In this document: piece by piece, positions 3,001 to 58,400 of the stretch
Layout: every line of letters begins with the position of its first letter
Numbering within the stretch: position 1 is the stretch's first letter
From: Paragordius varius
Lineage: Eukaryota > Animalia > Nematomorpha
NCBI GenBank assembly: GCA_964247055.1
Contig: OZ176053.1
Location: forward strand, 2,046,001 to 2,110,000
Direction: 5' to 3'
DNA length: 64,000 bases
Notes under the pieces: generated by a model
What the model saw: the letters and a program-made list of their open reading frames with translations, nothing else
What the model was told of the DNA's origin: nothing
The model's database searches: none
Translations under genes and position numbers: made by a program

Positions 3001-5099
3001 GTGCATTTGAATTTTAAATGGTATATATGTGATACATCAATACTGATAATTTTTAAAACCTTTACATTAGAAACACAAATACGGTACAATTATCAAACGC
3101 CCAAGATATCATTATTGATTTAGAATCGGATCCCGAGTTAGATCAATTGCTTATAAATGGTATAATATACATCATCAATCATGTAACTAATTATTTTATT
3201 ATACAATAATTTTAACTCATGCTATTTTACTCTAAGAAGCTGTCGGTTAAAAAATTGTTTAACTTAAATGGAAAAATGTTGTTTTATTATAGATTCAAAT
3301 AGCAGTGTAGCAAAGAAATCTAATGACGTTACACATTTTCCAACCATTAATGCGCCATCGTTTACACCCTTTTTTGTTGAAACTAAAAACGTTGGTAGCG
3401 GAAAAATGGTAAAAACTCAAACTAAAAGTGTTAAACCAATTTTTACTTCAGCCGTAAAAAGATTTTCCTCCCAATCCTCAATAAATTCTTTTAGCAATAT
3501 TCTCAACAATGCTAAAAATGATAATAAGCCCATTTTGTGTAATTGTAAGAAATCACCCTTACTCCTTACAACCAAGAAGGGCCCTAACAAAGGACGCCAG
3601 TTTTATAAATGCGCTAATCCCACGGAAAATAAAAAGTGCAATTTTTTTAAATGGGCCGATGATGGAATCGGTACATATATTTATTTATCAAAAAAATTAT
3701 TTTATTAAACTGTTTTCCCTTAGAAATGAATTTGGAGTTTGTTTAATTATATTGCTGGCTAAAATAGTTACACTAATATATTTTTTAGTTTTAAGAAACC
3801 ACTATACTTTAACAATCGTTTCAAGCAGTCAAAACTTTTTCTTATTAATAAACATTTTCTTACCTAATCTAATTGTGCATACATTGGAAATCGTTGAGAA
3901 ATTAACTTTTTGAATAAGTGCCAACACGTTTAAATTGATTGGGAATAAATAAATTTAGAATATAATATTAATTTTATTTTTTTTATTTGACTCAAATTTA
4001 TTTGGCAGAAAATTCATCACCATCTGCTTCAAGGAGTGTTGGGAGCGCCCTTAATAACACAGACCCCATATTTAATGCCTCATACAACAATATAAGAAAA
4101 AATTTTAATGGTAATAACCGCTTGGAATTTCAAATATGTTAAATAAGGCATTTTACGCTATATATTTTGTTATATACATATATTTACAATATAAATTCAC
4201 CCTTGAACAATTCAATTTAGTCTTGAAATTCAAATTCACCCTAAAAATAATTTATGTGTTTTCGGACTATTATAACTCTCATTCATATGTAATATATCTT
4301 TATGGCCAAGCTTATATATAAGTTTTTCAGTATTATATTAATTTTAAGCAAAATTTTATTTTTTAAAAATATAAAACATATAAGTATATTTTAATCTAAA
4401 AAAAACAATTTATTTTTAGAGTGTTGAATTGTTCTAGGGTGAATTTGTGTAAATGTTATATTTAATTAATGGTGATTTTTAAAATTAATTTACATTATTT
4501 AGTTAAAACTAAATCTCAATCTTCTCAAGTTTTGTGTGGTTGTCAAGAACCTGCCGTTTTAAGAACCGTTGTTAAGGATGGCCCAAACAAAGGTAACTAT
4601 TTTATAGAGATTTATACATTTTAATATATCAGTCAATTTTCCTTTTTAACAGACGCTATTTTTTTAAAAAATATTTTCGAAATTTCGACATTTGTTCAAC
4701 TATTAATAATTGTCATAAAAATGCAATTAATCTTTTTTTTGCATGAAAAAAAACTACATAAAAAGTTTATATAACATAAAAAGATCTCTTCGCAATTTTT
4801 TTAATAATGTTTTTATTAATTTTTTAAGTTTGCATACGCTTTTTAATTCAATATAGTATCAAATTATTTAATTTTTCAAAAATCCGCATATAAATTTTTA
4901 ATTTAATACATATATAATTACAATTTAGTATGATTGTACATAGTTTATGAATATATTAACTTATCTAATTGATCTATTTTCATTTATGCTAAATAACCTT
5001 TATTCATAATTATCCCTAGGTAAGACATTTTATACCTGTTCAAAGCCCAGAGAAAGTCAATGCAATTTTTTTCTTTGGGGAGAAAGCGATCGGAACTAA
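2..5099 (+). CDS. TOP3A: DNA topoisomerase III alpha, 3' part (5' end lies upstream of the window)
   Basis: Phase-consistent GT-AG exons <1-101, 777-963, 3071-3159, 3293-3670, 4009-4110, 4503-4592, 5020-5099 (TAA). Translation gives YPECKVCLWFP...CRECP / YRIIVL...MCLGCD (C4 topoisomerase Zn ribbon, like human FPECRSAVWLP..CPVC..CIGGCDD), then two GRF Zn fingers: CNC..GPNKGRQFYKC..CNFFKWAD and CGC..GPNKGKTFYTC..CNFFLWGE. Confidence 0.9.
264..705. mobile_element. Foldback-like MITE family A, copy 1
   Basis: TAMCATTTAC...GTAAATGGTA ends; tandem 21-bp units AATTCAAATTCACCCTTGAAC inside both TIRs; TOP3A intron. Confidence 0.85.
1138..1426. mobile_element. MITE family A, copy 2
   Basis: Same ends and core in opposite orientation; TA on both sides. 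Confidence 0.85.
1712..2032. mobile_element. MITE family A, copy 3
   Basis: TATACCATTTAC...GTAAATGGTATA with five tandem 21-mers on the left. Confidence 0.88.
2040..3023. mobile_element. MITE family A, copy 4 (carries family B insertion 2198-2773)
   Basis: A-family left and right halves separated by a B element at the TTAA of ...ATTAATAATGAG. Confidence 0.85.
2198..2773 (+). mobile_element. piggyBac-like MITE family B (TTAA TSD)
   Basis: TTAA|CACTTGGATACAAC...GAATCAAAGTG|TTAA; the empty site is visible in other family A copies. Confidence 0.88.
4178..4460. mobile_element. MITE family A, copy 5 (eroded ends)
   Basis: 21-mer units and A-family core in TOP3A intron 4111-4502. Confidence 0.75.
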
Positions 5100-6224: not shown

Positions 6225-9200
6225 TCAAGATTTGACAATTTGAGAGATAAAGGTGAACCAAGATATATTAGGTTTATCCCATTTCATAATACAACTCGAC
6301 AATTCCATATATAAAGGATCGATTTTTTCGAATTTCTAATGTAATTAATTTATTTATCTATAATATGTTTGAACAAAGTAATTTGTAAATTTTAAAAATG
6401 AAATTATCTAATATATTGAAAATCAATAAAAAAATAAGTTTATACACATCTTTATTAATTAACTTTTAAAATTAAACACGAATTTTTATTTATACAATTT
6501 TAATAATTTTATTAAAACACTATATATATAGTGTGGCAAATTTAGGGTCAGAAATGTGATTTTTAATATTTGTATTTTTGGATAAAGAAATTCTTTAGAG
6601 CGTTCAGAATCGGGAAAAAAATTAGGAATCACTTTCAGGAAACTCATTAACTGGCTATGGACAAAATATTTAAATATTTGTCTTAATTAAAAATATAATT
6701 TTAGGTAAATAATTTAATAGCATATCCTGCCTTTATTTATATGTTAAAGATTTGACATAAGATATTGGCATCGTATCAGAAGTAATATATATATCTTTAA
6801 AAACACTTTTATAAGTATAATCTGCTTATTTTTTTATTTAAAAGTTAACCAAAAGCTAATATTAATAATTTAGGGGAACCATTATATACATTAATACCCT
6901 TAGAGTATAACATTCAATAAAGTTTAAGAAAAAAATTGTGTAATCAGATTTTACTTTTTATTTCATTGGACGTAATATTTTATATAAAATGTAAAGTTTT
7001 AAACATATATAAATGATTAATTGCTCTATAGTACAAAAAATTAGAGGATAACTTTTTTAACTATCAAGTAAAGCGAAATATTCGGTACCTAGTTGCTTAT
7101 ACCTATCAATAATAACACCCTTGAACATTCAAATCGAACAAATCAAATCTACCCTTGAATTTAAATTCACCCTAAAAATAAATGCGTTTTTGAGCTGATA
7201 TAACTCATTATTAATATTTAATATATCTTTATGGCTTAGTTTATATTTTTCAGTATGATTTTAATTTTAAACAATAAAAATACAGGTAATTTTTAATCTT
7301 AAAAAACACAATTTATTTTAGGGTGAATTTGAATTGTTCAAGGGTGAATTCGAAGTGTAAATGGTATATTTATATAATGAATAGGCACAAACAATGTAAT
7401 GGAAAAGTAAAACCTTTTCCATAGTTTCTTTGTCATTAATTTTGGAAAAAATTGGATGGTTATCATTAATATACAAGTAGTCATAACTCTGACGGTTTAA
7501 TTTCCTTTCTGACGATGTTAAATGGCGATATAAATCATCTTGGTGCAAAATTTTCAATAATAATTTACTATCAACAAATGGTAAGAGGGCGACCCCTAAA
7601 TGAATAAACATTGTAGATATTATTAGATATTGTAATTATTATAAAGATTAAAAATAGAAATATAAAACTTGGATACAACAAATTCATTTCCAATTCAAAT
7701 TGGGGTCTTTGAGCCCGCCAGGCTTGTTTAAAATTAAATATTTATTTAAAAATATGGAACAAATTAATAAGTGCAAATGTTTGCACTTATATAACATTGA
7801 TGCACGGAAATATAAGAAAAATATTTGAAAAAACTTTATATTGTTTATTTTAACACAACAAAATTAGTAAACATAACAGATCTGCTTTAGCCAACTATAA
7901 GATGCAAAATACACCACTTTATTTTATTTATATCAATAATTGGTGTAAATAAAAAATTAATTTTAGCGTTTAAATTAAGTAAATTTGATATTTTGCAAAA
8001 ATGTTGTAAAATAAAAATGGGGTTGAAGTAGTTTTATATGAAACGTTTTTTCCAAAACTAGCTTGGCTTGTTTTTATACAGTAGTTTTGAAAATTGTCAA
8101 CTTATACACCCCAATTTGAGTCGAAGGGTCATACTTCAAATAATTTTAAGCTCCACTAATATTTAAAAAATTTAAACAGGTATATTAACATCCGGCCCTC
8201 AATTTGAATATTTATCAAATATAATAACATTTCATAATATGTCTAAAATAGTAAAATTGATATTTCAATGAATTTTCATATAAGTCTTTCCAAATTAATT
8301 ATTTCCTATTACAGTTTTAAATTTGAAATCTAATAAAATTAATGTTCATATATTTTTCAAAATTTTTGAGTCAAAAATGCGGCTAGCGAAGCCATTTGTG
8401 TTGGGCACCCCGACCCATGGTTTAGACAAAAATTATTAGTAAAGAAAACCATATTCATATTTTTTATAATTTTTTTTTTAATGTAACCTTTCGTTTTGGG
8501 TTATGGAATAAGGAAAGCGATTAATACACATGGTAACTTACGTTTAATGATGTGTCTTTATAGATAAAAGTTTTTAAAATAATCAGGCTTCAACACTAAA
8601 TTTTAAGCCAATATAGTTAAGTGTATGTTATTAAGACATGACATACTTTGTGAAACGTATTTGGCGTTGTTGATATCAATCTTATATTTCGTTGGATATA
8701 AATGCTTTATGGGTGAATCTTTGTTTGTCATAAGTTCTCCCCATTTTTCTGGGAGGTAGTCTACATTCAAAGGCGGTAAAATAGCCATAAGTTGTTCAAA
8801 TGGGAGACACTACAATACAAATTATTTGGTCATAAACAGATTTAAGTTTTTTACACATTTGATTGGAAAATTCATAGAATGTTATGTGTATTTTGCTTGC
8901 TTTTCTCAAAAGGTTTTATGTTTTACAAAAATTGTACCGTTTTTAAGATTGCTGAATCGTTACCGTTTTTAAATATAATGTTGGTAAAAAAATTTGAAGT
9001 TTCTACGGTAGATAAAAAAATTTCAAAAACCAAATTTAAAGTATAAATTAGTTTAATATCGATAATAATATATGTAAATTTCATACAGGTCGTGTATTTG
9101 GCTCAAACGTGTAAGCGGCTCGATGATTGATATAGCGAAAATCTGAGGCAAATGGTGCATAGTAATATGGGTAATACCATGTCCAGCAGGGACAACCTTG

Positions 9201-12090
9201 AAAGTATAATAGGAGGACCCAGCAAAGACCTTTAGTGTAAGCTTCGGCCTAGTCATATAAACATGCCATTTAAATTATAATCTTTCTTAAATATATCCAA
9301 ATTTGAGTGGGTAACGACGAGGGTTTGTAATGTAAATGATATTAAAATCGTCGTATAATTTTTTATAAAAAAATGCACATTTGGTTATTTTATATAACAA
9401 CGGTTTAGTTATGATCCTTCTTTCATTTGTCCACTAACGGTTCTTTTGTGATTTTTTCCTATATAAATAGTATCAACCATGAATTTGTTCATTTTTTAAT
9501 TAAATTTTTTATCTTATATTATATATATTTTTATTAACTAATCTCCTGATGCCTATGCAGAAAATTTAAGAATTAATAAATTTATATTTCCTTTTTAGGT
9601 TATTTTACGACGATTTTAACATCATTTATATTCAAATTATTTAATTTGCCGTGTATAATATTAAAAACATAAAACATGCATAGTTTTACTTAATAATGGT
9701 AACTAAATTGTATTATGACTTACAACTTTTGCATTTAAGCTATCTTTGCAGAGTCCTTCAAATTTTTGGGAATAATAACGTTCCTTATAATTCGGGGCCC
9801 AAAATCTACAAAATTACAATTTTCATATGTTAGATATAAGTATAAATATTTATGTAAAAAAGATGGCTTTATATAGCATTTTCAAATTGTTAGAATTTTA
9901 AATCTAAAAATATCAGAGGTACTTTATAGCTATAAAATGATTTTTACGGTAAAAATATGGCAAATATATATATATATATATATATATATTTGAAATAAAA
10001 GCCTATAAATCATATATGTATTTCTCCACGCCAACAAGTTTAATCGTATGTTTTTTTGTCTCCTTTACCGTAGTAATGTTAAAAGTTAATAACAATGGTT
10101 ATTAAATCTTCACAATCGAAAAAAGTTTTGAAAATAATGCGTTTTAAAAATCAACTTTGGAGTTTTATCGCTCTAAATGAAACGTGCCGCCGGTTTATTT
10201 TTCAATATTGGTTTAAAAAACCATAATTTTTATAAATTAAATACGAACCCATGTTTGGCGCTCTATTCAAGTAGTAATTACAAATATATCAACCAACAAA
10301 ACGTATAAAATAAAAGACAAATATTTTTTTGAAGTGACAACCATACTTTTAAACCTTGATATTTTCCATATAAACTATATAATTAAATTTTGGAATTATT
10401 TCTCTATTTTAATGGGCGACCCATAAAGAAAAATTATATTTAAAAGAATTAGGGTTTATATGATAGTCTTTTGGAAAAAAAGGTCTAATTTTTACATTTC
10501 GTCCGTATAATTTCAATTTTACTCTTTTATATATATACATTACCTAACATCATATTTGGGATTGATTTCTGTCAAATCTTCCTTTCGTTTAACCAATATT
10601 TGTTTCAGTTTTCCCGAATAATAAGGCTCATTATTATTACTCCCTTTTTTCTATATTTACAAAGATGTTAGTTAAAAATATGTTGTTAAAAATTAAACGA
10701 ATAAATTTGTCCGTATAAAAACAAAATATCTATTTTGTAATAATTTACATTAGCTGAGGTATATTCATCGTTTCCACTGTTTAGAAATTTTCTTGGTTCT
10801 TTAATCGTCATTGAAGTAAAAGATTCCAATAATGGTAGAAACTCTTGCTCTCCACCGCTCATAATTCTTTCACTGCAAAAGTTACGTTTCAAAATATAAA
10901 GAAATATTCATTAATTATATTTGAAATATTATCAATATAACAATTAATACGAAATGATAATTTTGTATAAGTATCATTACTTCGGTATTTAAATGACTAA
11001 AAGTCTGTATATTTACATGTCTATTCACATTTATGAAATTTTTTAATTTTATTAGTTAAAGAATAGATTGTGATTGTGAATAAAAAAATATAATGGCGCT
11101 TGTTTGCATAGTATTAATTTAACACTTCAATACCTTTTCATTTTTTTGTCCTCGTTTACTTGGGGTAATTTTATATTCCAGAAGAGCTCAAATATTAAAA
11201 GAAGTTATTTTAGTTAAAATTTCTTTTTCAAACATTCTTCTTATCTATTAGATAAAAAAAGTTTATTTCAGTTTTATGACTTCTAGAGTCTAAAATTTGG
11301 CAAATCAAAATGATTGAAACATATAGCTGATATTAAAATTGAAAAAATATCAAGTTTTTGCTGGTAAAATGTAACCTAAAAGCTTTTTAGATTTAATTAT
11401 TTACATTATACGTTTATTTTCAATTGTTTTAGTGTTAGAGCTTATATATTAAGTTTAAAAATTCACAAACTCTCATATTGTGCTAAATATTTTTGATAGA
11501 TACTAAATTTTAAAATTTAAATAATTATTTTCATTTGGGTGTTAGACAATGTTTATTATTTTTATCTTCTAAACCCATTTTTGCTATTTATAAAAGGTAT
11601 GTCATTTTTATAATAAACTGTAATGTGAAAAGAATCAACATTTTAAATAAAAAAATCATCAATCAAACTTTTGGACTATGTTTTTATTGTTGTATCTTAT
11701 TTCACGATTGTGCCTTTGCTCAAAGATCTTATCTTCCATGTATCCAAATTTAATGAGAATGCCGCGCATAAAATATACATCTAAAACGCCATTATGTGTT
11801 AAATATCCAGCCTATATATTAATTAAAAAAATTAAATTAGCTAAATTTAAATGGTTACAGTATATATATTTGTCGAAATAATCCTTAAACCCGATTCGTA
11901 ACGTCGTCAGAGGTGTGTTATCAGTAAATGATTATATATTTTATTCATAGCCATTAAAGTTAAAATACTAAATGCAATTTGTGATTATATCCGACTATGT
12001 TTTATAATAGTAAAGTGTTAACCCGAGTATCTAAGATTTTCAGGTATATGTTGACTAATTTATCCAATGCATTCTCCCTAAATAAAATTT

Positions 12091-12129
<39 letters not shown>

Positions 12130-15100
12130 AGTTTTTAATGCAAAATCCATATAATGACAATGTACTTTATTTCCATTGAAGGTATTTGGGGTAGATAATT
12201 GTTCCCAACAATTATAAACAGAGCAATCCAATCATCTATTAATCTAAATTTTATATGATTAAAATTTAAGATAATGTATTAATGGTCAGAGAGAGACAAA
12301 AAATTATTAATATTCAGCAGATAAAAAATTCAATTCTTTTGCTTAAAGGAGATTTTGGCTAAAACCTTTTAACTGGCAGATGGAGAATGTTTGTTGGATA
12401 TACCATTTTTCAGTAAAAAGCAATATTTTTCAAGCATATGCAACATTTTTTCACTAAATGCAACATTTTCAACCTAAAGCAAAATTTTTCATCCAAACGG
12501 AACTAAAAAAGTGGCGATGGCTCAAAAAATGTTCTGTTTGTTTGAAAAATTGCGTTTGGTTGAAAAAAGTGTTGTTTTTGATTGGAAAATGGTATACTTA
12601 CATATGAGGCATATTTTTCTATGCGCCAAGGACAGTTTAAACTAAAAACATGACGCTTTACTGTAATAAAACAAAAGAATGGAAAGAAAAGCGTGAATCA
12701 AAGTTTCAAACTTATTTAAAAGTATATCTCTTTTACACGGTATTTTTTAAAAAAAAGTCAGTCATGTTTTTCCCCCAATCAAGCCATAATATGGTTTTTT
12801 GCTTGTAATTTTTTTACTTTTTTCCTAGAAATCAATATAAGTGGAAAAGTTAATTAATTTTTTGGCGTGGGCGAAACTAAATATATAAATTACCGACTTT
12901 TGCTTTCAAAAAAATATTAAATGCATATTATATTTATAAGTGGGATAATTTTATCTTCAATCCATCATTTTTGTAATCAAACAATGTCGGGCATACAAAT
13001 TTAAATTCAACCTTTCGCTTTTATCATCAGGGCCTGCCATTGAAAGCGTTTCATGGATGTGCTGATTGAATTTACGATTAGTAGAGTTGACATTATAATG
13101 AATATTTGATAAATCAAACAATAAATCACGTTTTAAGATTCGGCGTAAAACATCCAATTGAATGAATATAAACTCGGTTTTATCGGCTTTTGCTATTAAA
13201 ACAAAATATATTGCCAAATATTTAAAAGCAAAATAACAAAGAACAAATCGAACAAAAGAAAACCTTCTTGATATGAATTATTTAGGCTACTGATAGTTCT
13301 CAAATCATTTTTATCTTTAATCTTCTTCATTAATTGAATCGGTATACACAATAACTTCACCATTACAGCCATCTCGGTTATGATCTATTATGTATATTTT
13401 AAAATTATATGCATAGATAGATCAGTGTCCATAAAAAATGATACAGTAGGCACACTTATGCTGGCCCATTCACATTATTGTTGGCCATCATTTAGTATTA
13501 CTCTAGCGTCTCCAATAAAGCCACATTTATCCACAATTAGCTAAACAAATTAACGTTGTAAGATAGGAAAGAAATTGTTTAATTTCACCAATTTTGGCTT
13601 TTATTCATACACTTCTGTGCCAATCGACCAACATAATGTGAATAAGTTAACATAAAGGTGCATACTTATCATAAAGGGAGTAGGACTCCATATTCACAGT
13701 TTTCGTACCACGAAGTAATTCATAACTTCCTAATATATATACTTCATGGTAATTTGAGGCGATTTTTTTAGGTAACACATGCCTTTATACACAACTAATA
13801 ATTTTACCGATCATTGAATTTAATTTCATTTTACAACATATTTCAGTGCCTGAGATTTTTGCCTTTTTTAGATTGCTTTGAGATAAAGAAAATTAAAAAA
13901 ATGCGCCTATTTAACCAAACCAAAACTTGATGTTTATACAAAATGCTTTTTTAAAACTTAAGATATACATAATTTAGTATTTTTGCTTAGATTTTACTCA
14001 AGAAGCGTAAATATTGTTTCGCCTTCAAACGGGTTAATCACATTTATTTATACCTAATACAGTGTGCTAAAATTAGCGTTTCACGGCCAAAATGATAAAG
14101 TTAGTAGTAAATTTTTACATTAAAAAACCTCCATACACACTTTACAAAATTGATATACCACTGTATTGCATTCAAATATATCAAATTTTTGCATTTAAGA
14201 TGCTTAACTTCATAATTTCGTTTCAAACACAAGGGTATAAAATTATGTATTTTATATCTTTAAATTTGCCCTATTTTAGCCATTTTGTGTTATAAATCAA
14301 AATTTTATAACACAAGAGTTCCACAACAAAAGGAATTATAATTAGTTTTTATTTTCTTTATAGGCAATGTGAACCACCATTTTTTGGATTTTGAAACCAG
14401 TTGAAGTATGCGAAAATACGAAATTAAAAACTACATTATTTGACCATAAACTCGGCACATTATGATAAATTATAATACTTTGGTCTCCACATAATTCACA
14501 AGGTGGATTGTATGATTTAGCCTCTTCGCGCATTATAGTTATACGGGGTTCGTGTGTTGCTAAGCCCAATAAAATTGCATCAAAGTAAACGCAATGATTT
14601 GTTTTTTGTTTTGAGATTGTTTCTACCATTACATAAAATTGTTGTTAATATAATTGATAATAATGTTTAGACAACTATGAATAACTATAAAAATAGTCAT
14701 ATCAATGATTTTTTCTGATTTTCTGTCTCACTTTAAAATTTATAGCCAAATTTACTCATACTTATCGGGTGTATTTATAAGATTTTACCGGTTTTTGGTA
14801 AAATACCTTACTTTGAAAGGGAAGGATTTATTTATTTTATTCAAAATATTCTACATCGGCTTCTATTTTTGCTCATATCTTAGGTAAAACTTGAATGCCG
14901 AGCCAGAAAAGCCGATTGACCTTTGCGGCTAACTATTCGTCGACATTTTCCAACGTCTTCGGAATTACTTAAAAGATGCTCTGCGAGGGTATGCCCCAGC
15001 AAACTTTCATTAGTCAGATGGCGCCAATTCAGGAAATTTAAGCTGTTGGCAAAGAATTTTATATTGAAGACATTTCAATGTGACTTTCACTGTTGCTGTG

Positions 15101-18100
15101 TGAGACGGAGCATTGTAATGTAGCACAATAACTTTGCCATGTCATCTGATTATTTCCGGTAGTTTTTCAATTAATGCATGGTTTAACCTATTTGTTGGCG
15201 ATAATGTGCTGTATTAATGGTTTCACCGGGTTTCAAATGTTCATAATACATAATATTGCTCTGGTCACCAGACACAAATCATGATCTTACGAAGCGATTT
15301 GGCTTTGGTGTTAATGGACTGACTTGGCAAGAGTTAAGATTTTCTCGCATTGGGAACACTAGATAAAGCTATTTAACACCCGTTTCGGATGCAAAAACGA
15401 TTTCTTTTCTAGACGCTTAATCAGGATTTTAGAATTCGCTTTACAATTTTTAATTGACGTTCATTTAAATTGTGTGAAACACATTATATTGATCTTTCCC
15501 ATTGTTCATAGATTAATTGATTTTTCGATATATTGATGCTTATTTGTTTTTTTTAGTATGAGTTGGGTTATCCTCCAATAATTCTTGCACTTTATTGTCT
15601 TAGCAGTTATGTAGTGTACCAGAGCTCCCATACCCTTTCACAGGAAATCACAACATTTAATATTACGAAACCATGTTTCACAGTTATAATCGATGAGACA
15701 TGTCTGCCATATATTTCACAGTAAGCGATAACTATCAACAGTTTTTTTCTTCTAATTGAGTAATAAAAGTAATGCGTGCCACAAATTTTCCTTTTCAGGC
15801 ATAAACATGATTGCTGAATGATAAAAAAGACGCTACCTTTTCGAAAACTTTTGCGCATTTGTCGTTTGATCTTAGATAAATAGTGTGTGTATTAAAATGA
15901 TCGTCTGCGTACTTTTCGCTGATATCTATTTAAACGGGTACTTTTGATTACACCTGATATAGTAAATATAAACAAGATAATTTCTCAAATTTGAATAATT
16001 AATTTGTTTTAAACTATATAATGCTTTAGCTATAGTATAATTTAAAAAAAAACTTATTGCAGTTTGTTTGCGGATAAAATCCATTATTTTATGTAATCCT
16101 TCTCCGGGCACATAAACGTCTGAAAAAATTACTTTAAGATTTTTCCATTTAATATCGTTTGAAAGACGATCTTTGATGTAATGTCTCATGCGATCACACA
16201 GAATATCCATGAATAAGGTTCCCTAAATATTTCATTAATTAAAACGCAAAAAAACTTATTTGGTATTTACCCAAATTGCACTTATAAATGGTAACAAGTT
16301 TTTACCGGTGTTATTTGATTTGTCAAAATTTTTTTCGTTATCATTTAAAACTGTGCGACCCTGAGCATGGAAATCTTGCTTAACTCCTTCAAAAAAATCT
16401 TTCCGTTCCCGACTTTCTTTAGCAATTCGAAAACGTCGACAACGTTGATTAAACCAATTTTCACATGGTGACTAAAATATTAGAAAAAATATTAGTGTTT
16501 TTTTGAGTTTTGTATCATATATAATATAATTGGGAGTATGAGTAATAAAACATAACCAGATTTTATAAATTATTGTCAGATAGCATCAGGGGTGTTACAC
16601 AAATGGCTTAGCGGGCCCTAAAAATACATGAGCATTTATAAATATTTTATTAGCCAATAAAACTAAATATTAAGAACCGAATATTATTTAGAGTAGGGGT
16701 GTCTAACACAAATAGCTTTGCAGACCGCATTCAAAAAATATATGGGCATTAAATAATTATATAGATTTCAATATACTTCAAAAAGAAAATGGAATTCAAC
16801 AATTTTTCTCGTTCTTGCTATTTGAAAAATTAAGAATATCAATTTTACCAAGATTTTGTGACATGTTTTTGCAAATTATGGATTCCAAATATTTCGCAGG
16901 CCGCACAAAAAGTATCGGAGGGCCTTAAGTTGGCCACCCCTGATTTTATGTGTACATATTTATGGCCGGATCACGCTTAAGTTGTCAATTGGCAATATAT
17001 TAGTACAGGTGAGCAACCATTTTGAAAGTGAGCCGTTTTTAAAATAGAAAATTTTAGGCGAGCCCTACGCTTGAAATAATTGAAATAGACCTCTATATTA
17101 ATATAATAGTAAATTAATAAAACGGAAATTTATCCTTAACATTACATGCTACATAAAAATAATAATGTGACTATGATTAAGCAATTTTGCCCTCCTTTCT
17201 AATTAAAATCTAAAAATTATTAATTTTTCTAAATGCTTTGGGGAGCCATATAACACACGGCAAGCGAAGTTTAACTCGCGAGCCCTAGGTTTCCGACCCT
17301 GCATTAGTGTATAGAAAAAAAAAACAATTTTGTTTTTTTCCCTGTGTCGCCAATTGACAACTGTGTGAATTAGCCAGCATTAAAATGCATACTGTATTTA
17401 ACATTTTGCTATTTTGTTGCCGAAATTTGGAAAGATCCATTCTGAAAATTTGCATGAGAAATACAGAAGGATCCTTATTATATAGGCCATATTTGTATTT
17501 TATAGGGCTAAAAGGGTATTTAATATGCCTGTGCCATATATGATGTTTTTCATTTTATTGGTTACATATTTAACACCTCATGACCTTTTCATTTTTTATC
17601 CGCGATGACATATTGGGGTAATGTTTAGTATCCCAGTGTTCAATCTTGTAAACAAATTACTCTTTTAAAATTTTAGTTAAAATTTAATTATCAAACATTG
17701 TTCTGCTGTATTAGATTTTGTAACTTCAAGAGCAAGGGTGTCCAACGGCTTTGGAGGCCGCTCGGGATCAAAAAAATCGACGGGCCCCATTTGCAAAATA
17801 TATGGGCACTAAAAAATATTTTATACTTATATTAAGATTTTTGCGTTTATTTCCGAAAAGCGCAAAGACTTATTAAAACATTTGGTTAAAAAATCAATTT
17901 TACTTGCCAATATTTTTATTTAAAAAGTCTTAAGACGATAATTTAGGTCTCGTTAGTTTAAGATTATAGAAGTAGCCTATTTAGCAAATTTCTTAATTGA
18001 AAGTCGCGGGCTGAAAATATGTCGGAGGGGCGTGTTAAACCATTGAGAGTTAGACCAATATAAGTATAAGCAAAGCAGCGACAACAAAACATATCTTTCT

Positions 18101-18778
18101 ATGCACCAACTTTAAGCAATCAGACTTGAAAGTATATACGGCAACATGAAAAAGTAGCAAAGTATATCTACTCATATAATTGATTTTCGGTAGCCTATTT
18201 AAATTAATTATATTGTACAATTTAGAGTCTCTTTTTTTAATTTTTTATAAAGTGTAAGGATTTGTATTGTACTCGGATATGTAAAGGCTTTAACAATCGC
18301 CTACCCAGGGATGACAGTGATGATGGAAAAAGTGATTAGTTTGAAGGCTGAACTTTGGCACACAGTGTAAAAGTCCGCCCTACCTACTATACCATTACGT
18401 TTCTATTTAAATTAATTATATTATTAGCAATAAATAATCTCAATATACCACTCCACTCACAGCAATGTAGACAAGTTTTTGAGGATTCAAAATTTGAATT
18501 AATTGGTCGATATAGGAATATATTTCAATTATTAAATCGTCCAGCTTGCTTTCTGAATACGGAGTACTTTTGTATTTATCATGGAAAAATTGATGAATAA
18601 TTCCATTCATATCCAAATAAACATGATCATATTTATAATGTGAACCATTGTGAAATAGATATGAAGGAAATTTCATCGGAAAACTTAATTCATCCTAAAT
18701 ATTATATTAAAGTAAAACTTTATCAATACATGAAGGGTATTTACGACGAAGCCAACGGAAAAATCCAGGACGACCCAT
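6225..18778 (-). CDS. 5'-3' exoribonuclease XRN2/Rat1-like protein with degenerate active site (~765 aa, 18 exons; 3' end tentative)
   Basis: Exons in transcription order: 18778-18719, 18694-18449, 16471-16271, 16222-16054, 14622-14479, 13384-13356, 13324-13264, 13192-13012, 12243-12166, 12077-12023, 11811-11669, 10872-10749, 10650-10544, 9805-9724, 9248-9087, 8809-8647, 7595-7414, 6335-6225 (last exon and the 13325-13355 intron are tentative). Motifs: [35 protein letters not shown] knuckle [53 protein letters not shown]. These fit XRN2 better than XRN1. Confidence 0.88.
7115..7366. mobile_element. MITE family A, copy 6 (left end truncated)
   Basis: A core and right TIR ...GTGTAAATGGTATA. 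Confidence 0.78.
7667..8127 (+). mobile_element. Family B, degenerate copy
   Basis: ACTTGGATACAAC...CCCCAATTTGAGTCGAAG with diverged B core. Confidence 0.65.
11130..11410 (+). repeat. Diverged dispersed repeat, second copy about 23530-23810
   Basis: Collinear shared blocks AGAGCTCAA, AAGTTATTTTAGTT, GACTTCTA.AGTCTAA, ATGATTGAA, AAGTTTTTGCTG.TAAA. Confidence 0.55.
12401..12594. mobile_element. Small TACCATTT-ended MITE with 19-20 bp degenerate internal repeats
   Basis: TA|TACCATTTTTCAG...GGAAAATGGTA|TA; repeats of the type TTTTCA..AAATGCAACA on both arms; XRN2-like intron. Confidence 0.7.
14765..15957 (-). mobile_element. Decayed full-length mariner (mauritiana-subfamily-like) in an XRN2-like intron
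   Basis: TA flanks at 14763-14764 and 15958-15959; imperfect TIRs TCRGGTGTA...TACC.GTTT. The frameshifted, stop-ridden transposase reads [74 protein letters not shown] (Mos1/Mboumar-like). Confidence 0.9.
16587..16942. mobile_element. hAT-type MITE(s), two left ends (16587, 16694) and one right end
   Basis: CAGGGGTGTTACAC and TAGGGGTGTCTAACAC...GTTGGCCACCCCTG. Confidence 0.65.
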
Positions 18779-31647: not shown

Positions 31648-32875
31648 TTACTGTTTTTCTGTAGCAGTGTTAATCATGTTTGATAGATTGGAAAATGTCA
31701 GATTTAATGCATAATTTATAAGGCCAACATTTGATGGTATGCCTGAGATAATATTCTCAAACTCATCCAAATAATCCTTGATAAATGAGGAATATCTATC
31801 TTTTTGAAATTGCGATTGATTAATCTTGTTCATAATAATTTCATTGAATAAACTTTCAATAATTTGTTGCATGGATTGTGTAACAAAAAATAAGGGATAA
31901 GCGTTTTGCATAGGCTCAAGTATAAATTGTTTTTCAATATGGTACTCTTTACAACGCTTAATATTATATGTTTGATAATTTTCACAGGTAATTTTATATG
32001 AATCAATTATTTTTTGGAGCGTTTCAATCAATTTTACCAAAGTTGATATGGAAACGTTCCAATTATATTGGCTACTCTCATCCTCTTGGGTGTATCGCGA
32101 CAAATATGTCAAATAGTTACAACACCATTTTTGTTTATGAATCTATTATTTTATAAGATCTGTCGTAATACTGTTGTGTAGTTTTGACATGCTTTAATGA
32201 CAAAGTCAATTATTTTTGATTTAAGTGACCGAACCTCTTGCCTTAAAAGAGCTTGTGGACTAATTATAATATTTTTTGAAATTTGTCCATTGTCTCTTGT
32301 AACATGATCTATAATTTTAATTATGCGTTTAAGCCATCTGTCGGTTAATACAAATTTTTCGTCCTAAATATACATGATGTTATGGAAAAAAATACAAACA
32401 TCGGTTGTAAAATAAAAATGTATATTTTCCCATGCGAAATTAATGTTTTCCAAGAAAATATTTAACTTTGCATCACTGTTCACATTGTCATAATTTTCTA
32501 ATATGTATGCTAATTTTAAGATCTCTTGATAAAACATATCTTGTTTGTTAACTCTTATGGAAGATAACGAGATTGTTTGATGCGTATCCTCAAACATATC
32601 CAAAACTAGTAGGTTTTATAAAATAAATTACTTTGCATATTTGATCTCTCATTATTTTGCGAATTACAATTTAATCTTGTCATGGCGTCTATGGCGGAAT
32701 CCAAATTTATTTGAAATATTTTAGGGAAATTAGGGGATTTTTGTGCATCGTATTTATTTTTCAGTTCACCCAAGAATTCAGAAACTGTTTGATGACATGG
32801 TTTTATCCTTATAATAGCTAAGGCAAATGCAATTTTATAACGCAAGACATAGGACTCAATAATTGTGTTATCCAT
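31648..32875 (-). CDS. MEI4: Meiotic double-strand-break formation protein MEI4/Rec24-like, 4 exons, 378 aa
   Basis: Three ORF-track fragments join through 26, 36 and 29 nt introns (exons 32875-32632, 32605-32400, 32363-32172, 32142-31648; 1137 nt). The N-terminus YVLRYKIAFALAIIRIKP matches the MEI4 signature (human WYLRTSKLALALAIIRSKP), and the length is close to vertebrate MEI4 (~385 aa). Confidence 0.75.
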
Positions 32876-33800: not shown

Positions 33801-49316
<15,516 letters not shown>

Positions 49317-52481: not shown

Positions 52482-55400
52482 ATGATTTTAAGGCAATTTA
52501 AAAATCTAAATGCAATTCGCAAAAATTTTTCCCATATACCGCAGCCGAGAAAAGGATTTGTCAACGAGTTGTTCGATTCCATCAAGGATGAATTAACAAA
52601 GAATAAAGAGATGAATGTAATATTATAATATAATATTTAGGAAAATTTGCGAAAGTTCAGAGAAGAAGCATCCAAACTTGAAAACTCAGATGCTCTCAAT
52701 CAAGTTAGGCAAAAATATCAAAAACTTGAAAAAGAAACGCTTGATAGCTCTAGTCAATTACGGGAACAGTTGGAATCTTTAAGGTCACGTTTAAGAGAAA
52801 CTTTAAATGACTCACAAAAATCAGAATTCACTAAAAAAGCTATTGAGCTTTCCGAAGAAATAGCCAAACAAGCTAAATCCGCTGCAGAATTAGCAAGTAA
52901 GGCGGGCCAATCGCTTGGCTCAACGGAAGTTTACAAGGCCTTAACCGAAGTATAAATTTTTTTCTTTAATTTGACTTGATTTTGCTGTCCAATTCATTCA
53001 AATATTAAATTAATGCCAGAATTATATGTATTTAACCCAGTTACACCCGAATAGATTCAACATTTATATTGAATATATTATTTAAATTAGTTAAGGTGCT
53101 TTTCTATGTTACAAAATCTGAGCTTATAGTTAATTCCACATTTTAATTGTAATAAATTAAATATAAGAGCTAAAAATTTAATATGATGTAATTTTATGAT
53201 AAATTTATAGCTATGTATAATACATTTAGCTCATTTATATCAATAGTTAACTCAAATCAATAATGATTTAAATACACCAATTTTAATTTTTTTGTCTATC
53301 TATTAACATTTTATATATTTATGTTTTTTGCATCTTTTTAAAGCATAATTTTGTAGGCTTATAGTTCTCTCCATAATTTTCTATTTGCAAGAGGGGTACA
53401 CTATTAATCACATGAATAATTCAAAGAGTTGCTCAATTAGATTGGCGATTTTTTAATTATCCATTGTTAAATTTGGCCTTCATAATTTTTTTTTGTATAA
53501 ACGATATCTTTCATGGTTGACACTGATATGAATAATTAATTAAAAAGGCAAACATTTTGCATAGAATTAATTAAATTGTTTTTTATTACAATATTAAAAT
53601 CAAAGTGTATTGTATTTCAGTTTTTGTCCATAATTCTACTGATCACTATTAGAGTTTAAAATATGGGCTAATATCTTTAAGCATATCTATAATTTACAAT
53701 ATATAAAATCAACTTTAAGATAATCATAATTTCTCATTTATTTTCTTTTTAGAGTGTCAAACTTTTGAAAGACGAAATAGAAAACCAAACTTCCATGCAT
53801 AATATGCATTACACACCGCTAACTAAATTACGGAAACGCAAAGAGGATCTCGCTGATGAACAACGTATCATTCCCACTAATACGTATGTATTAACTTTTT
53901 TTTGACAAAAAAATATAATAATATGTTTATTACTTTATGTTTAAATTTTTTTAAATAATTTATCAAATAAGGTTGAAACATACAGTAATAGTCATGTAGC
54001 CTTTATTTTATTAAGTTGAATGGGTATAAATATCTGTAAAAGAATAAAAAATACAAGAGCTCTATGGTTTAACAATATCATATTCATCAAAAAAGTAAAA
54101 GAGGTGTGGGGAGAAAAGGCTTCAGCAATCTTATATGGTAAATTCCATACTCTTTTAACATTAATTTTAAGATGAAGAGTTAGTCTATTTCCATTAGCTT
54201 AAACATCATTACCATATAAAGATTATCACGCCTTCCCCCTGAACTTCTTTTATTTTTTTAATGAAATGATATATTAATCACCATAGAGCTCTTGTAAATT
54301 CTATTCTTTAACGCATATTTATACCCATTTAACGAAAAAAAATAAATTTTTGATAAAATAAATACACGACTGTAGTATTTTTAAAACGGATAACTCGGAT
54401 TTTAAACGGCTACAAAAATATGATTTTTTATATTTTTTTGAGGGGGGGGGGATATACTATTAACACATTTCTTATTTTTTATCGTTCAATGATTCAATAT
54501 ATTAAAAAGGTTATATTTTTGTTGGTTATTTATATGTGTTTAAAATATGGGGTTATTTGATTTAAAAATAAGCAACCAAAAAAACTTTGCCAAATATGGA
54601 AGGAAACCCACAATCTTTTATACTTTGGAGCAAAATTATTCATAATTAATTAATTTTAAACTTACTTAATGAATAGCAAACAAGTTCATTCCTCCTCCTT
54701 ATTTCCATAATATCTAACTAATGCAAAATATCATTTATTACAATACTATTCTAGAATAATCTGAGAATTTTTTGGGGTTATATGTTAAAAAACTGTAAAA
54801 CTTAATTTTAGCTAAAAAAATGTATTCAATGTTTTTTTTAGCGACGCCACCGATGTTGTAATGCACAAAGAATCTCGTTGGTATCAAAGTTGGCAAAATT
54901 GGAAAGATAATAATCCCTACATAAATAGTACGTTGATTTTTAACATTATTAACTATTTTATAAGAAAAGTTTTTTATGGTATTATAAATTATATTATTAC
55001 AAATGTTTGCTTTGTTAGAAATGTTTGATTTAAAGGCGAAATACGATGAAAGTGATAGCATTTTGATTAGGGCTTCACGCTTTATAACAGACAAAGTTTC
55101 AAATGCCGTAGGTATAAAATTAATAAATTTTATATACATATACAGTCATACCTCTTTTTTATAAGGTTTAAATTATTAATTTTTTTGTGTAATTATGCTA
55201 TAATTTTAATATTTATTCTTGATAATATGATATTCTTAGTGTCAAAATTTAGGCTTTATTTTGAATTTGTTGCAAAGATAACAATTTGCAATTTATTTTA
55301 ACGCTAACCTTTTTTTGAATGAAATTAAATTTTTAATAATAATTATATAATAGTATACCATTTCCCAGCCTAAATAAACGTTTTCCCAGTCAATCGAAAC

Positions 55401-58400
55401 ATTTTCCCAGTCAATCAAAACGTTTTCCCAGTCAATCGAAACATTTTCCCAGTCAATCGAAACAATTTCTCAGTCAATAAAAACGTTTTCCCAGTCGATA
55501 AAAACGGTTTTATTCTTGATGATAAGTATCAAAACAAGATAGAAAAATAACTTTTAACCATTATCAGCGTAATATTAGGATATTATTTTTTATAAAATCA
55601 CAATTATTTAATGACAATATTTCCTATATATTCTAATACACAATCATTAATAATTTATTATTTAAAAGCTATATTTTATTAACTGGAAGAATATTTTATG
55701 GTTTTTAAGTATTTTTAAGAAAATATTTAATAATTTTTTTATTTTATCGATGCTTCGCATTAATATTCGAGGCTAACTTTTAAAGTCTATAGTTACGGAT
55801 AATAAAATTTATAAAAATATACCATTTTATCTCAAATTGGTCATTTAACACTTCATATTGGGTCTTAAACATATATTTTACCCTATTTTTAATATTTATC
55901 ATTTGGTTCATCGCCTAAGGCGGCCTCCCGAATCTTTGTGCGGCCCGCGAAAAATTTGGAAATCCAATGCAAAAATTTGCCAACAAGATCTTAGTAAAAT
56001 TCATATTTTTTACGCTATTATTCTAAATGAGTCTATAAAATTGACAACGAATTAAAAAATTCTTATGTTTAAGATCGAATAAATTATTTATGAATGTCCT
56101 TATATAATACGAATTCGCAACGCCGTGCTTTTTGAGTTAAAAATGCGACCCGCAAAGCCATTGTGTTAGAATATCCTTTTTTATAAAATAATTTTAAATG
56201 AAAAACAGATATAAAACCATGTTTTGTTCAAACTTTTTTCCGACAGTATTTTTTACACAATTCGACATGTTTATGATCCAATTTGAAGTGTTAAATGACC
56301 AATTTGAGATAAAATGGTATATTTTTATAAATTTTATTATCCGTAACTATAGACTTTAAAAGTTAGCCTCGAATATTAATGCGAACCATCGATAAAATAA
56401 AAAAATTATTAAATATTTTCTTAAAAATACTTAAAAACCATAAAATATTCTTCCAGTTAATAAAATATAGCTTTTAAAGAATAAATTATTAATGATTGTG
56501 TATTAAAATATATAGGAAATATTGTCATTAAATAATTGTGATTTTATAAAAAATAATATCCTAATATTACGCTGATAATGGTTAAATGTTATTTTTCTAT
56601 CTTGTTTTGATACTTATCAGCAAAAATAAAACCGTTTTTATTGACTGGGAAAACGTTTTTATTGATTGAGAAAATGTTCTTATTGACTGGGAAATTGTTT
56701 CGATTGACTGGGAAAATGTTTCGATTGACTGGGAAAACGTTTCGATTGACTGGGAAAACGTTTCGATTGACTGGGAAAACGTTTTGATTCACTGGGAAAA
56801 TGTTTCGATTGACTGGGAAAACGTTTATTTAGACTGGGAAATGGTATATTTTAACAATTCAAGTCGTTTTTTTGTGGAACGACTTTATATTTTATTTTGA
56901 AAGTAACACTATCTGAATTGACACTGTATACATGTTGTTTTTTTGAAAAGGCGGTATATTTAGCAACACAGAGCTTTCGGATGTCTTAACAGAAATTACT
57001 AAAATGGATCCTTTGTTTGATAAGGAAACATTTTTGCGAGATTGTAGGACAGATATTGTTCCAAATATTTTAGAGGTAAAAAAATATGAAATTTTTTATT
57101 TTTTCGTTTTTGTGAGCTTGATTATTTGAATAACTTACTGCTAAATAGTATTTGTTAAAAATTATATATCGTTTTTTATGGTAAAAACCATAAAATTTTA
57201 AACGGATTTGTGTCACTCCTTTTTTGGAGTCTAAAAATAGACTATTAAATAAAATTAAAGTGAAAGATACTTTTAAGAGATAATGAAAATTATTTTTCGC
57301 GAAAGACCGTGTTTTTTTATACATTCCTACAAATTTGGTTTTTTATATTTTTGTTTGATTATAATTTATGCTTCAACCAAATTCTTTGCATATTGTATGA
57401 ATCAGAATATATATAAAGTGAGATATTACATTTTTGTTTAAAACTTAACTTTTTTTATTTGGATTTATATTTAAATTAGGCCAAGTATATTCATGTAATT
57501 GAGAATTTTAGTTTTTTTAAATGTCCATATTTTTAATGTTTCCATTTTATATCTATATGTATGTAATTTTTTATTAAAGGCAATGTTACAAGGCAATCTC
57601 GAAATCCTTAATGATTGGTGTCATGAAGCGGTATATCATCTGTGTTTAAATAGTTTTCATTTCCTCTATTTTACCCAATTTTTTTTAATTTAAATTTTTT
57701 TTCGTAAATATTTTATGGTTTAATTTTGAAAATTATATAGTGTTTTACACACGCAGATACAAGTAATAGGATGAATTTTATTGATTTATACTCAAATGTG
57801 GTGAACATAAATTTTATATCTTGCTAAATTATAATTGGTCCATTATAACTTATTTTTATGAAATATTTATCGATTAATACTAATATTTTTAAAAAGCATT
57901 TTTCATAGATGTATAATTTTGAATCCATTTATTAAGAAACCTTTTAATTCTTATAAATCAACTTTTTGATTTTGTATTTTTAACGTTTTATGCTCCATAA
58001 ATTCAAAAAATCATAATTTTTTGATATTTTATTCTGTTTTTTAATAAAAACATCACCCACATTCCAAATTTAGCCATACAATGTATTATCTACACCAATT
58101 AAACAAGCCTATGGCCTAGGTTATCATTTTGAATCTAAACTCATCGATATTTCACCCATTGAACTTTCTTCAGGAAAAATATTAGAACAAGGGCCTGTCC
58201 TCGTTATCCATTTTAATACACAACAAATCATGTGTATTAAAGATAGCAAGGGCAATGTTATTGAAGGTGATCCGGTAAAGATTAATGATTTATTTTACTC
58301 TAGTTGTTAAGTGTATTTTTGTTTGAAAAAAAATATATCGATATAGATTAAATTGCAAAAAGTCTTGCAAATGTTTTTATATATCTTAAATTCATAAAAT

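Follow-up and report, generated by a model that had tools for sequence, protein, structure and literature searches.

A candidate pseudo-exoribonuclease derived from XRN2 in the hairworm Paragordius varius

The canonical 5'-3' exoribonucleases XRN2 and Rat1 (structures 5fir, 3fqd and 7opk) carry an XRN_N domain followed by an XRN_M domain, with an N-terminal MG.P.FFRWL segment, a DMNGIIH motif and an RRF helix. Two kinds of homolog of RNA-decay factors lie close to the gene described here. Fungal pseudonucleases of the Ssd1 type derive from Dis3L2; they are exoribonuclease paralogs that have lost catalytic residues but kept fold and frame, and the canonical enzyme persists beside them (PMC8097288). 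Drosophila Cutoff, the Rai1/DXO homolog of the Rhino-Deadlock-Cutoff complex, evolves fast, is homologous to a 5'-end factor of the XRN2/Rat1 pathway and is thought to bind rather than cut (PMC3243597, PMC7061269). Here we analyze an XRN2-like gene with a dismantled active site in a 64,000-nucleotide stretch (the window) of the genome of the nematomorph Paragordius varius (assembly GCA_964247055.1, contig OZ176053.1, positions 2,046,001 to 2,110,000). Coordinates count from the first base of the window, and those of the gene are on the minus strand.

The hairworm gene has the XRN2/Rat1 domain order and the motifs listed above, together with GLATHEP, the CCHC knuckle, YAPFASDF and VALLPF, and it groups with metazoan XRN2. 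Unlike XRN2/Rat1, it has the replacements D86S, E178L, D291N, K93N and W540S and no recognizable C-terminal region. It parallels the Ssd1 type as an exoribonuclease paralog without its catalytic residues, although the fungal proteins have the 3'-5' RNase II fold and are expressed RNA binders, whereas the hairworm paralog is a 5'-3' XRN and is known here from its gene. Cutoff resembles it in its fast evolution and in a presumed action by binding instead of cutting; the family of Cutoff is that of an XRN2 partner, not of XRN2 itself. Full-text literature searches returned no report of a catalytically dead XRN-family paralog. The explanation we favor, with a probability of roughly 55%, is that the gene encodes a maintained, non-catalytic, fast-evolving and lineage-specific metazoan XRN2 paralog, that is, a pseudo-exoribonuclease.

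Active-site residues were mapped onto solved Xrn1 chains, ungapped except in the DxD loop, and are given in K. lactis Xrn1 numbering (D291 corresponds to D288 in Drosophila). The mapping reproduced the residue numbers used in a preliminary, sequence-only reading of this DNA, and all of the motifs quoted there lie on the minus strand where they had been placed. Exon 2 (18449–18694; XRN_N, E 2e-15) runs from DMNGIIH, with D35 and H41 kept, to IAVSGV, in which D86 is serine (AGT, 18457–18455); if the donor at 18461 is used instead, this position again lacks aspartate, as had been proposed. In exon 3 (16271–16471) K93 of the 5'-phosphate pocket is asparagine (16459–16457), with Q97, R100 and R101 kept. 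Exon 4 (16054–16222; XRN_N, E 2e-18) spans GTLFMD to PGEGLHK and keeps E176, while E178 is leucine (TTA, 16096–16094). D291 is asparagine in the GNNYLPQ of exon 8 (12166–12243, an XRN_M match; AAT, 12200–12198), and the stacking residue W540 is serine in the KYVSQ of exon 13 (8647–8809; XRN_M, E 2.9e-14; TCA, 8653–8651). The unchanged positions are D35, H41, Q97, R100, R101, E176 and D208, and the fold-defining blocks and the CCHC knuckle are likewise retained, as the sequence-only reading had said. Three of the seven metal-binding acidic residues (D86, E178 and D291) are replaced in every sequence seen; D206 is also missing from the window allele.

Xrn1 E178Q and the equivalent E207Q of S. 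pombe Rat1 have been used as catalytically inactive proteins (PMC8850482), and since E178 is leucine here, the loss of exonuclease chemistry is a safe prediction: processive 5'-3' activity on 5'-monophosphate RNA should be absent. With both E178 and D86 gone the two-metal site presumably cannot form, and RNA would therefore not be cut. The gene appears to have descended from XRN2 rather than XRN1 and fails the catalytic definition of the XRN family; its product is most likely a pseudoenzyme, with a predicted homologous fold from which essential catalytic residues are gone. This bears out the earlier description of a spliced, unbroken XRN2 homolog with a non-working active site. Of 125 XRN columns that are near-invariant, the gene retains 90, differs in 32 and has gaps in three. 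Changes affect about 37% of these positions inside the active-site motifs versus about 21% outside, where they are mostly conservative, so that the suggested concentration of losses in catalytic residues holds only to a mild degree.

The gene was delineated by tblastn with canonical XRN2 proteins and by a profile made from the full-length sequences of 34 XRN proteins, drawn from a search of 1.84 billion representative proteins; exons were then chained by enumerating in-frame GT-AG junctions. Colinear XRN-like blocks, found by tblastn, the XRN profile and Pfam, extend from 18778 to ~7414 and yield a single consistent chain: 15 exons provide 663 codons, free of stops and frameshifts, and all 14 introns have GT-AG ends. 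The frame is open throughout only if a 24-nt segment at 18718–18695 is spliced out (see below). Exon pieces match positions 29–95, 150–203 and 209–241 of the XRN_N profile (PF03159; E 2e-15, 2e-18 and 3e-4), and XRN_M (PF17846) is matched colinearly over positions 7–356 of 443. The 17 exons and ~730 codons of the sequence-only reading are reduced accordingly, as its last two or three exons (7260–6225) have no XRN similarity. The G+C content of the window is 26.2%; the values published for a hairworm genome are 26.93% G+C and 63.8% repeats (10.1101/2023.06.26.546503), and both figures fit the window.

The remaining exons complete the chain. Exon 1 (18719–18778) carries the start codon and the conserved XRN N-terminal segment, with about 12 of 16 residues as in canonical MGVPAFFRWLSRKYPS. 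In exon 3 the arginines are followed by FDKSNNTG and an 11-residue insertion; this segment aligns better with the FDSNCITPGT of canonical enzymes than FISAIW-GT, a few codons downstream, which had been put forward as its homolog and probably is not. Exon 5 (14479–14622) holds the DxD region, at about 14596–14561, and the beginning of the XRN2-type knuckle (C-x2-C-x4-H-x4-C, after GLATHEP), and exon 6 (13361–13384) holds the rest of it. Exon 7 (13012–13192, or with an alternative donor at 13120; open frame of 106 codons) joins a conserved part to a lineage-specific insert that closes with SER, ahead of LIDDW. Exon 9 (12023–12077) was placed by tblastn and junction enumeration, and exon 10 (11677–11811; donor 11669 also possible) by its XRN_M match. 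Exon 10b (10544–10650), absent from the first model, ends in EINPKYDVR with a consensus AG/GTAATG donor; its acceptor is ambiguous (10650, 10643 or 10639), and its junction with exon 11 matches canonical NVRLWEEGWKERYY. Exon 11 (9724–9805) is found by tblastn, junction enumeration and the XRN profile, and exon 12 (9087–9248; XRN_M, E 1.8e-19) encodes the structural core, with YAPFASDF at 9161–9138. Exon 14 (7414–7595), which reaches XRN_M position 356, is the last with XRN similarity, and its donor is uncertain. Past 7414 many splice combinations are possible, the candidate C-terminal exons (6225–7260) being open frames at 7260–7132, 7128–7060, 6686–6489 and 6335–6228. A tail reading SPLNNSNSP ends three unrelated minus-strand open frames (7321–7350, 1362–1400 and 517–560); it is a dispersed repeat and accounts for the continuation of the exon 14 frame beyond its likely donor.

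Several features of the introns were recorded along the way. Within intron 2, summed contig depth in run X1, which has the same species label, is ~17,000 at 17651–17850 and ~12,000 at 18251–18450, versus ~100 in single-copy parts, and the intron therefore holds very high-copy short repeats resembling miniature inverted-repeat transposable elements. In intron 4 (~15013–15370, minus strand) frames judged by eye resemble a mariner/Tc1 transposase remnant (HTATVKVTL, ELAPSD). A weak look-alike, LFIFTISGV...RRRSF at 15975–15835, has a tblastn E of 12 and was judged a chance match.

The strongest argument for a long-lived non-catalytic protein comes from the open frame. Stops make up 7.4% of codons in the introns of the gene, against 663 open codons in its exons. 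In a model of 630 codons that omits exon 10b, a stop would arise from 6.1% of possible substitutions, and, with indels allowed for, the unbroken frame caps fully neutral evolution at ~1.1–1.6% divergence (95% level). The five altered functional codons require at least eight base changes in 15 bases. Set against neutral drift of at most ~1.6%, this indicates that any relaxation of constraint came, if at all, long after the active site had been dismantled, and that selection went on preserving the frame once catalysis was gone.

The identity of the gene to XRN references is 38–42%. In a tree it falls within metazoan XRN2, beside Intoshia, Trichuris and Neoechinorhynchus, although with a terminal branch of 1.48 versus a median of 0.62 (2.4-fold) long-branch attraction is possible. 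The species also expresses a canonical XRN2. RNA-labelled run X6 yields one 1607-base contig (depth 78) that touches the window only at the two most conserved motifs, with an 86% match to 18592–18633 and a second at 14545–14569, the two being separated by 530 further letters. Translated, the loose ends of this contig give LLEDNPNGI and FTIIREEFK, both of them canonical XRN2 sequence. The earlier thought that this genome might lack a canonical XRN2 is thus not upheld.

Contigs from independent runs show that the key replacements are not assembly errors: X1 and X5 (the latter labelled B) agree with the window at the Ser86 and Leu178 codons, and also in exon 1 and the 24-base segment. The DxD motif is different. 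An X1 contig over 14436–16796 (depth 103) has nine extra bases behind 14586 and reads SSDFD, with D206 and D208 both present, and this version aligns residue for residue with canonical HCLCGADADLIMLGL. The three-residue gap in the window therefore reflects either a deletion allele of derived state or a fault of the assembly, and the reported loss of one Asp of DAD applies to the window allele or assembly and not to X1. These nine bases are the sole exonic indel seen between individuals and keep the frame; the intronic indels listed are of 1–2 nt. Other differences in the core exons are a Ser-to-Asn change at 18684 in X5 and, at non-ligand positions of the knuckle, Asn-to-Ser and Gly-to-Ala changes in X1 (13384 and 13369). 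Where it is covered X5 is nearly identical to the window (its word share of 0.49 reflects depth, not divergence), so a test of the ratio of non-synonymous to synonymous rates with X5 had no power. Two X1 contigs cover 12910–13226 at about half depth each; one equals the window and the other has 21 substitutions and seven gap letters over 317 nt, as if the haplotypes were very divergent. Differences listed for the second haplotype end at 13087, short of the conserved part of exon 7.

The main rival is that this is a young unprocessed pseudogene, a long-diverged non-catalytic paralog that is now silent and has not yet acquired a disabling mutation. We consider this unlikely, but a number of observations favor it and weigh against a maintained protein. 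RNA-labelled runs X6 and X8 contain no contig of the gene, even though the canonical XRN2 contig is seen, and none of the RNA runs, which are few and small, gives word matches to exons 1–5 or 12–13. Differences between individuals are three non-synonymous to zero synonymous in the core exons and, for the exon 7 insert of the second X1 haplotype, six to one in 13012–13119 (none listed in 13088–13195), an excess that looks like weak present-day constraint. The reference carries the 9-nt deletion removing the D206 position, within the former active site. In all, 35 of the 125 near-invariant positions (28%) are changed or lost. The C-terminal part is unrecognizable, the remaining 87 XRN_M positions and the C-terminal tail finding no match in any downstream open frame. 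With exon 2 as query, no ortholog or annotated copy was found among the 1.84 billion representative proteins; the matches are canonical XRNs only, the best 48% identical over one exon, and all have Asp86. The removal of the 24-nt segment as an intron is also deduced from the DNA. Against a young pseudogene stand the 663 codons without lesion and the 14 regular introns, which leave room for at most ~1.6% of neutral decay, and the fact that the single exonic indel is in frame; and with so few and small RNA runs, the absence of a transcript is weak evidence.

A maintained paralog also requires that the 24 bases between exons 1 and 2 (18695–18718, phase 0) be spliced, as they contain TAA and TAG in frame. 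tblastn aligns straight across them, as though the canonical first exon were continuous, which leaves a choice between two lesions and one very short intron. Were the former true, the exon chain would be a construct, with the two stops at 18709–18695 as true lesions in an old decaying pseudogene; 24 nt is indeed under the intron size of almost all animals. We regard this as improbable. Both stops fall exactly within a GT..AG unit, the last 15 nt of which (TAATATAATATTTAG) recur just once in the window, at the end of a second 24-nt unit at 52617–52640 on the plus strand. This unit, a candidate phase 0 mini-intron of a TIM44 gene, also runs from GT to AG with TAA and TAG inside, and links a 72-codon to a 104-codon open frame. 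A downstream exon of that gene (58074–58307) matches the C-terminal Tim44 domain; on the N-terminal side, the junction KNKEMN/ENLRKFREEA would align ungapped with KNKEMKESIKKFRDEA of human TIM44. A scan of the window for 18–35-base segments bridging two open frames of at least 40 codons found 11 GT..AG loci versus ~4 expected from dinucleotide frequencies (~2.8-fold enriched). Two further frame-bridging candidates (26 nt at 32631–32606 and 29 nt at 32171–32143, minus strand) link three long open frames of 114, 83 and 164 codons in a gene that matches no Pfam family. The 20 codons ahead of the XRN2-like segment are still ~75% identical to canonical XRN2, which is not expected of untranslated DNA, and the rest of the gene is open. 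We therefore read 18718–18695 as a probable spliced intron. An alternative genetic code with TAA and TAG as glutamine was rejected, as TGA ends other frames, the introns resemble those of animals and both stops fall within a GT..AG unit.

That the protein is still an active nuclease, working through its remaining acidic residues (D35, E176 and D208 in both versions, D206 too in X1) and a 5'-phosphate pocket that is three-quarters intact, or through alternative exons or alleles restoring the lost ones, is very improbable, since change of E178 alone abolishes activity and D86 and D291 are gone as well, while a profile scan of all open segments of at least eight codons, covering the window on either strand, detected no alternative XRN-like exon that could return the Asp and Glu residues, and X1 and X5 have the same Ser and Leu codons.

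Elsewhere in the window, plus-strand open frames at ~40231–48281 carry by-eye hallmarks of ionotropic glutamate receptors (GYGIATP), which suggests a multi-exon receptor gene. A 146-codon open frame at 3268–3705 (plus strand) ends in a candidate GRF-type zinc-finger-like motif (GRQFYKC....CNFFKWAD).

A simple scenario for the maintained paralog is that exonuclease chemistry was lost long ago and the locus was retained as a protein-coding gene in an AT-rich, transposon-rich genome. Since the N-terminal segment, the helical core and the residues His41, Gln97, Arg100 and Arg101 are retained, the protein could still adopt an XRN2-like fold, and it may dock a 5'-monophosphate end or XRN2 partners, holding or shielding these rather than degrading RNA. 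It would probably act in a stage or tissue so far unsampled by RNA sequencing. Shielding of 5' ends, a role as partner decoy and a link to transposons are what we infer for such a paralog. The fuller proposal, that this is the first XRN-family pseudo-exoribonuclease, kept by selection and holding 5'-monophosphate RNA ends or partner proteins beside the canonical XRN2, perhaps when horsehair worms are at a parasitic or germline stage, we put forward tentatively, as possible but a little short of probable.

Dead RNA-decay paralogs such as Ssd1 and Cutoff have proved to be regulators, binding the targets that their ancestors cleaved. The locus can further serve to test gene finding where standard pipelines miss ultra-short introns. 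If expressed, the hairworm protein would be a natural separation-of-function XRN2, with the fold and the 5'-end pocket but without the chemistry, and could show which roles of XRN2 are carried out by binding alone.

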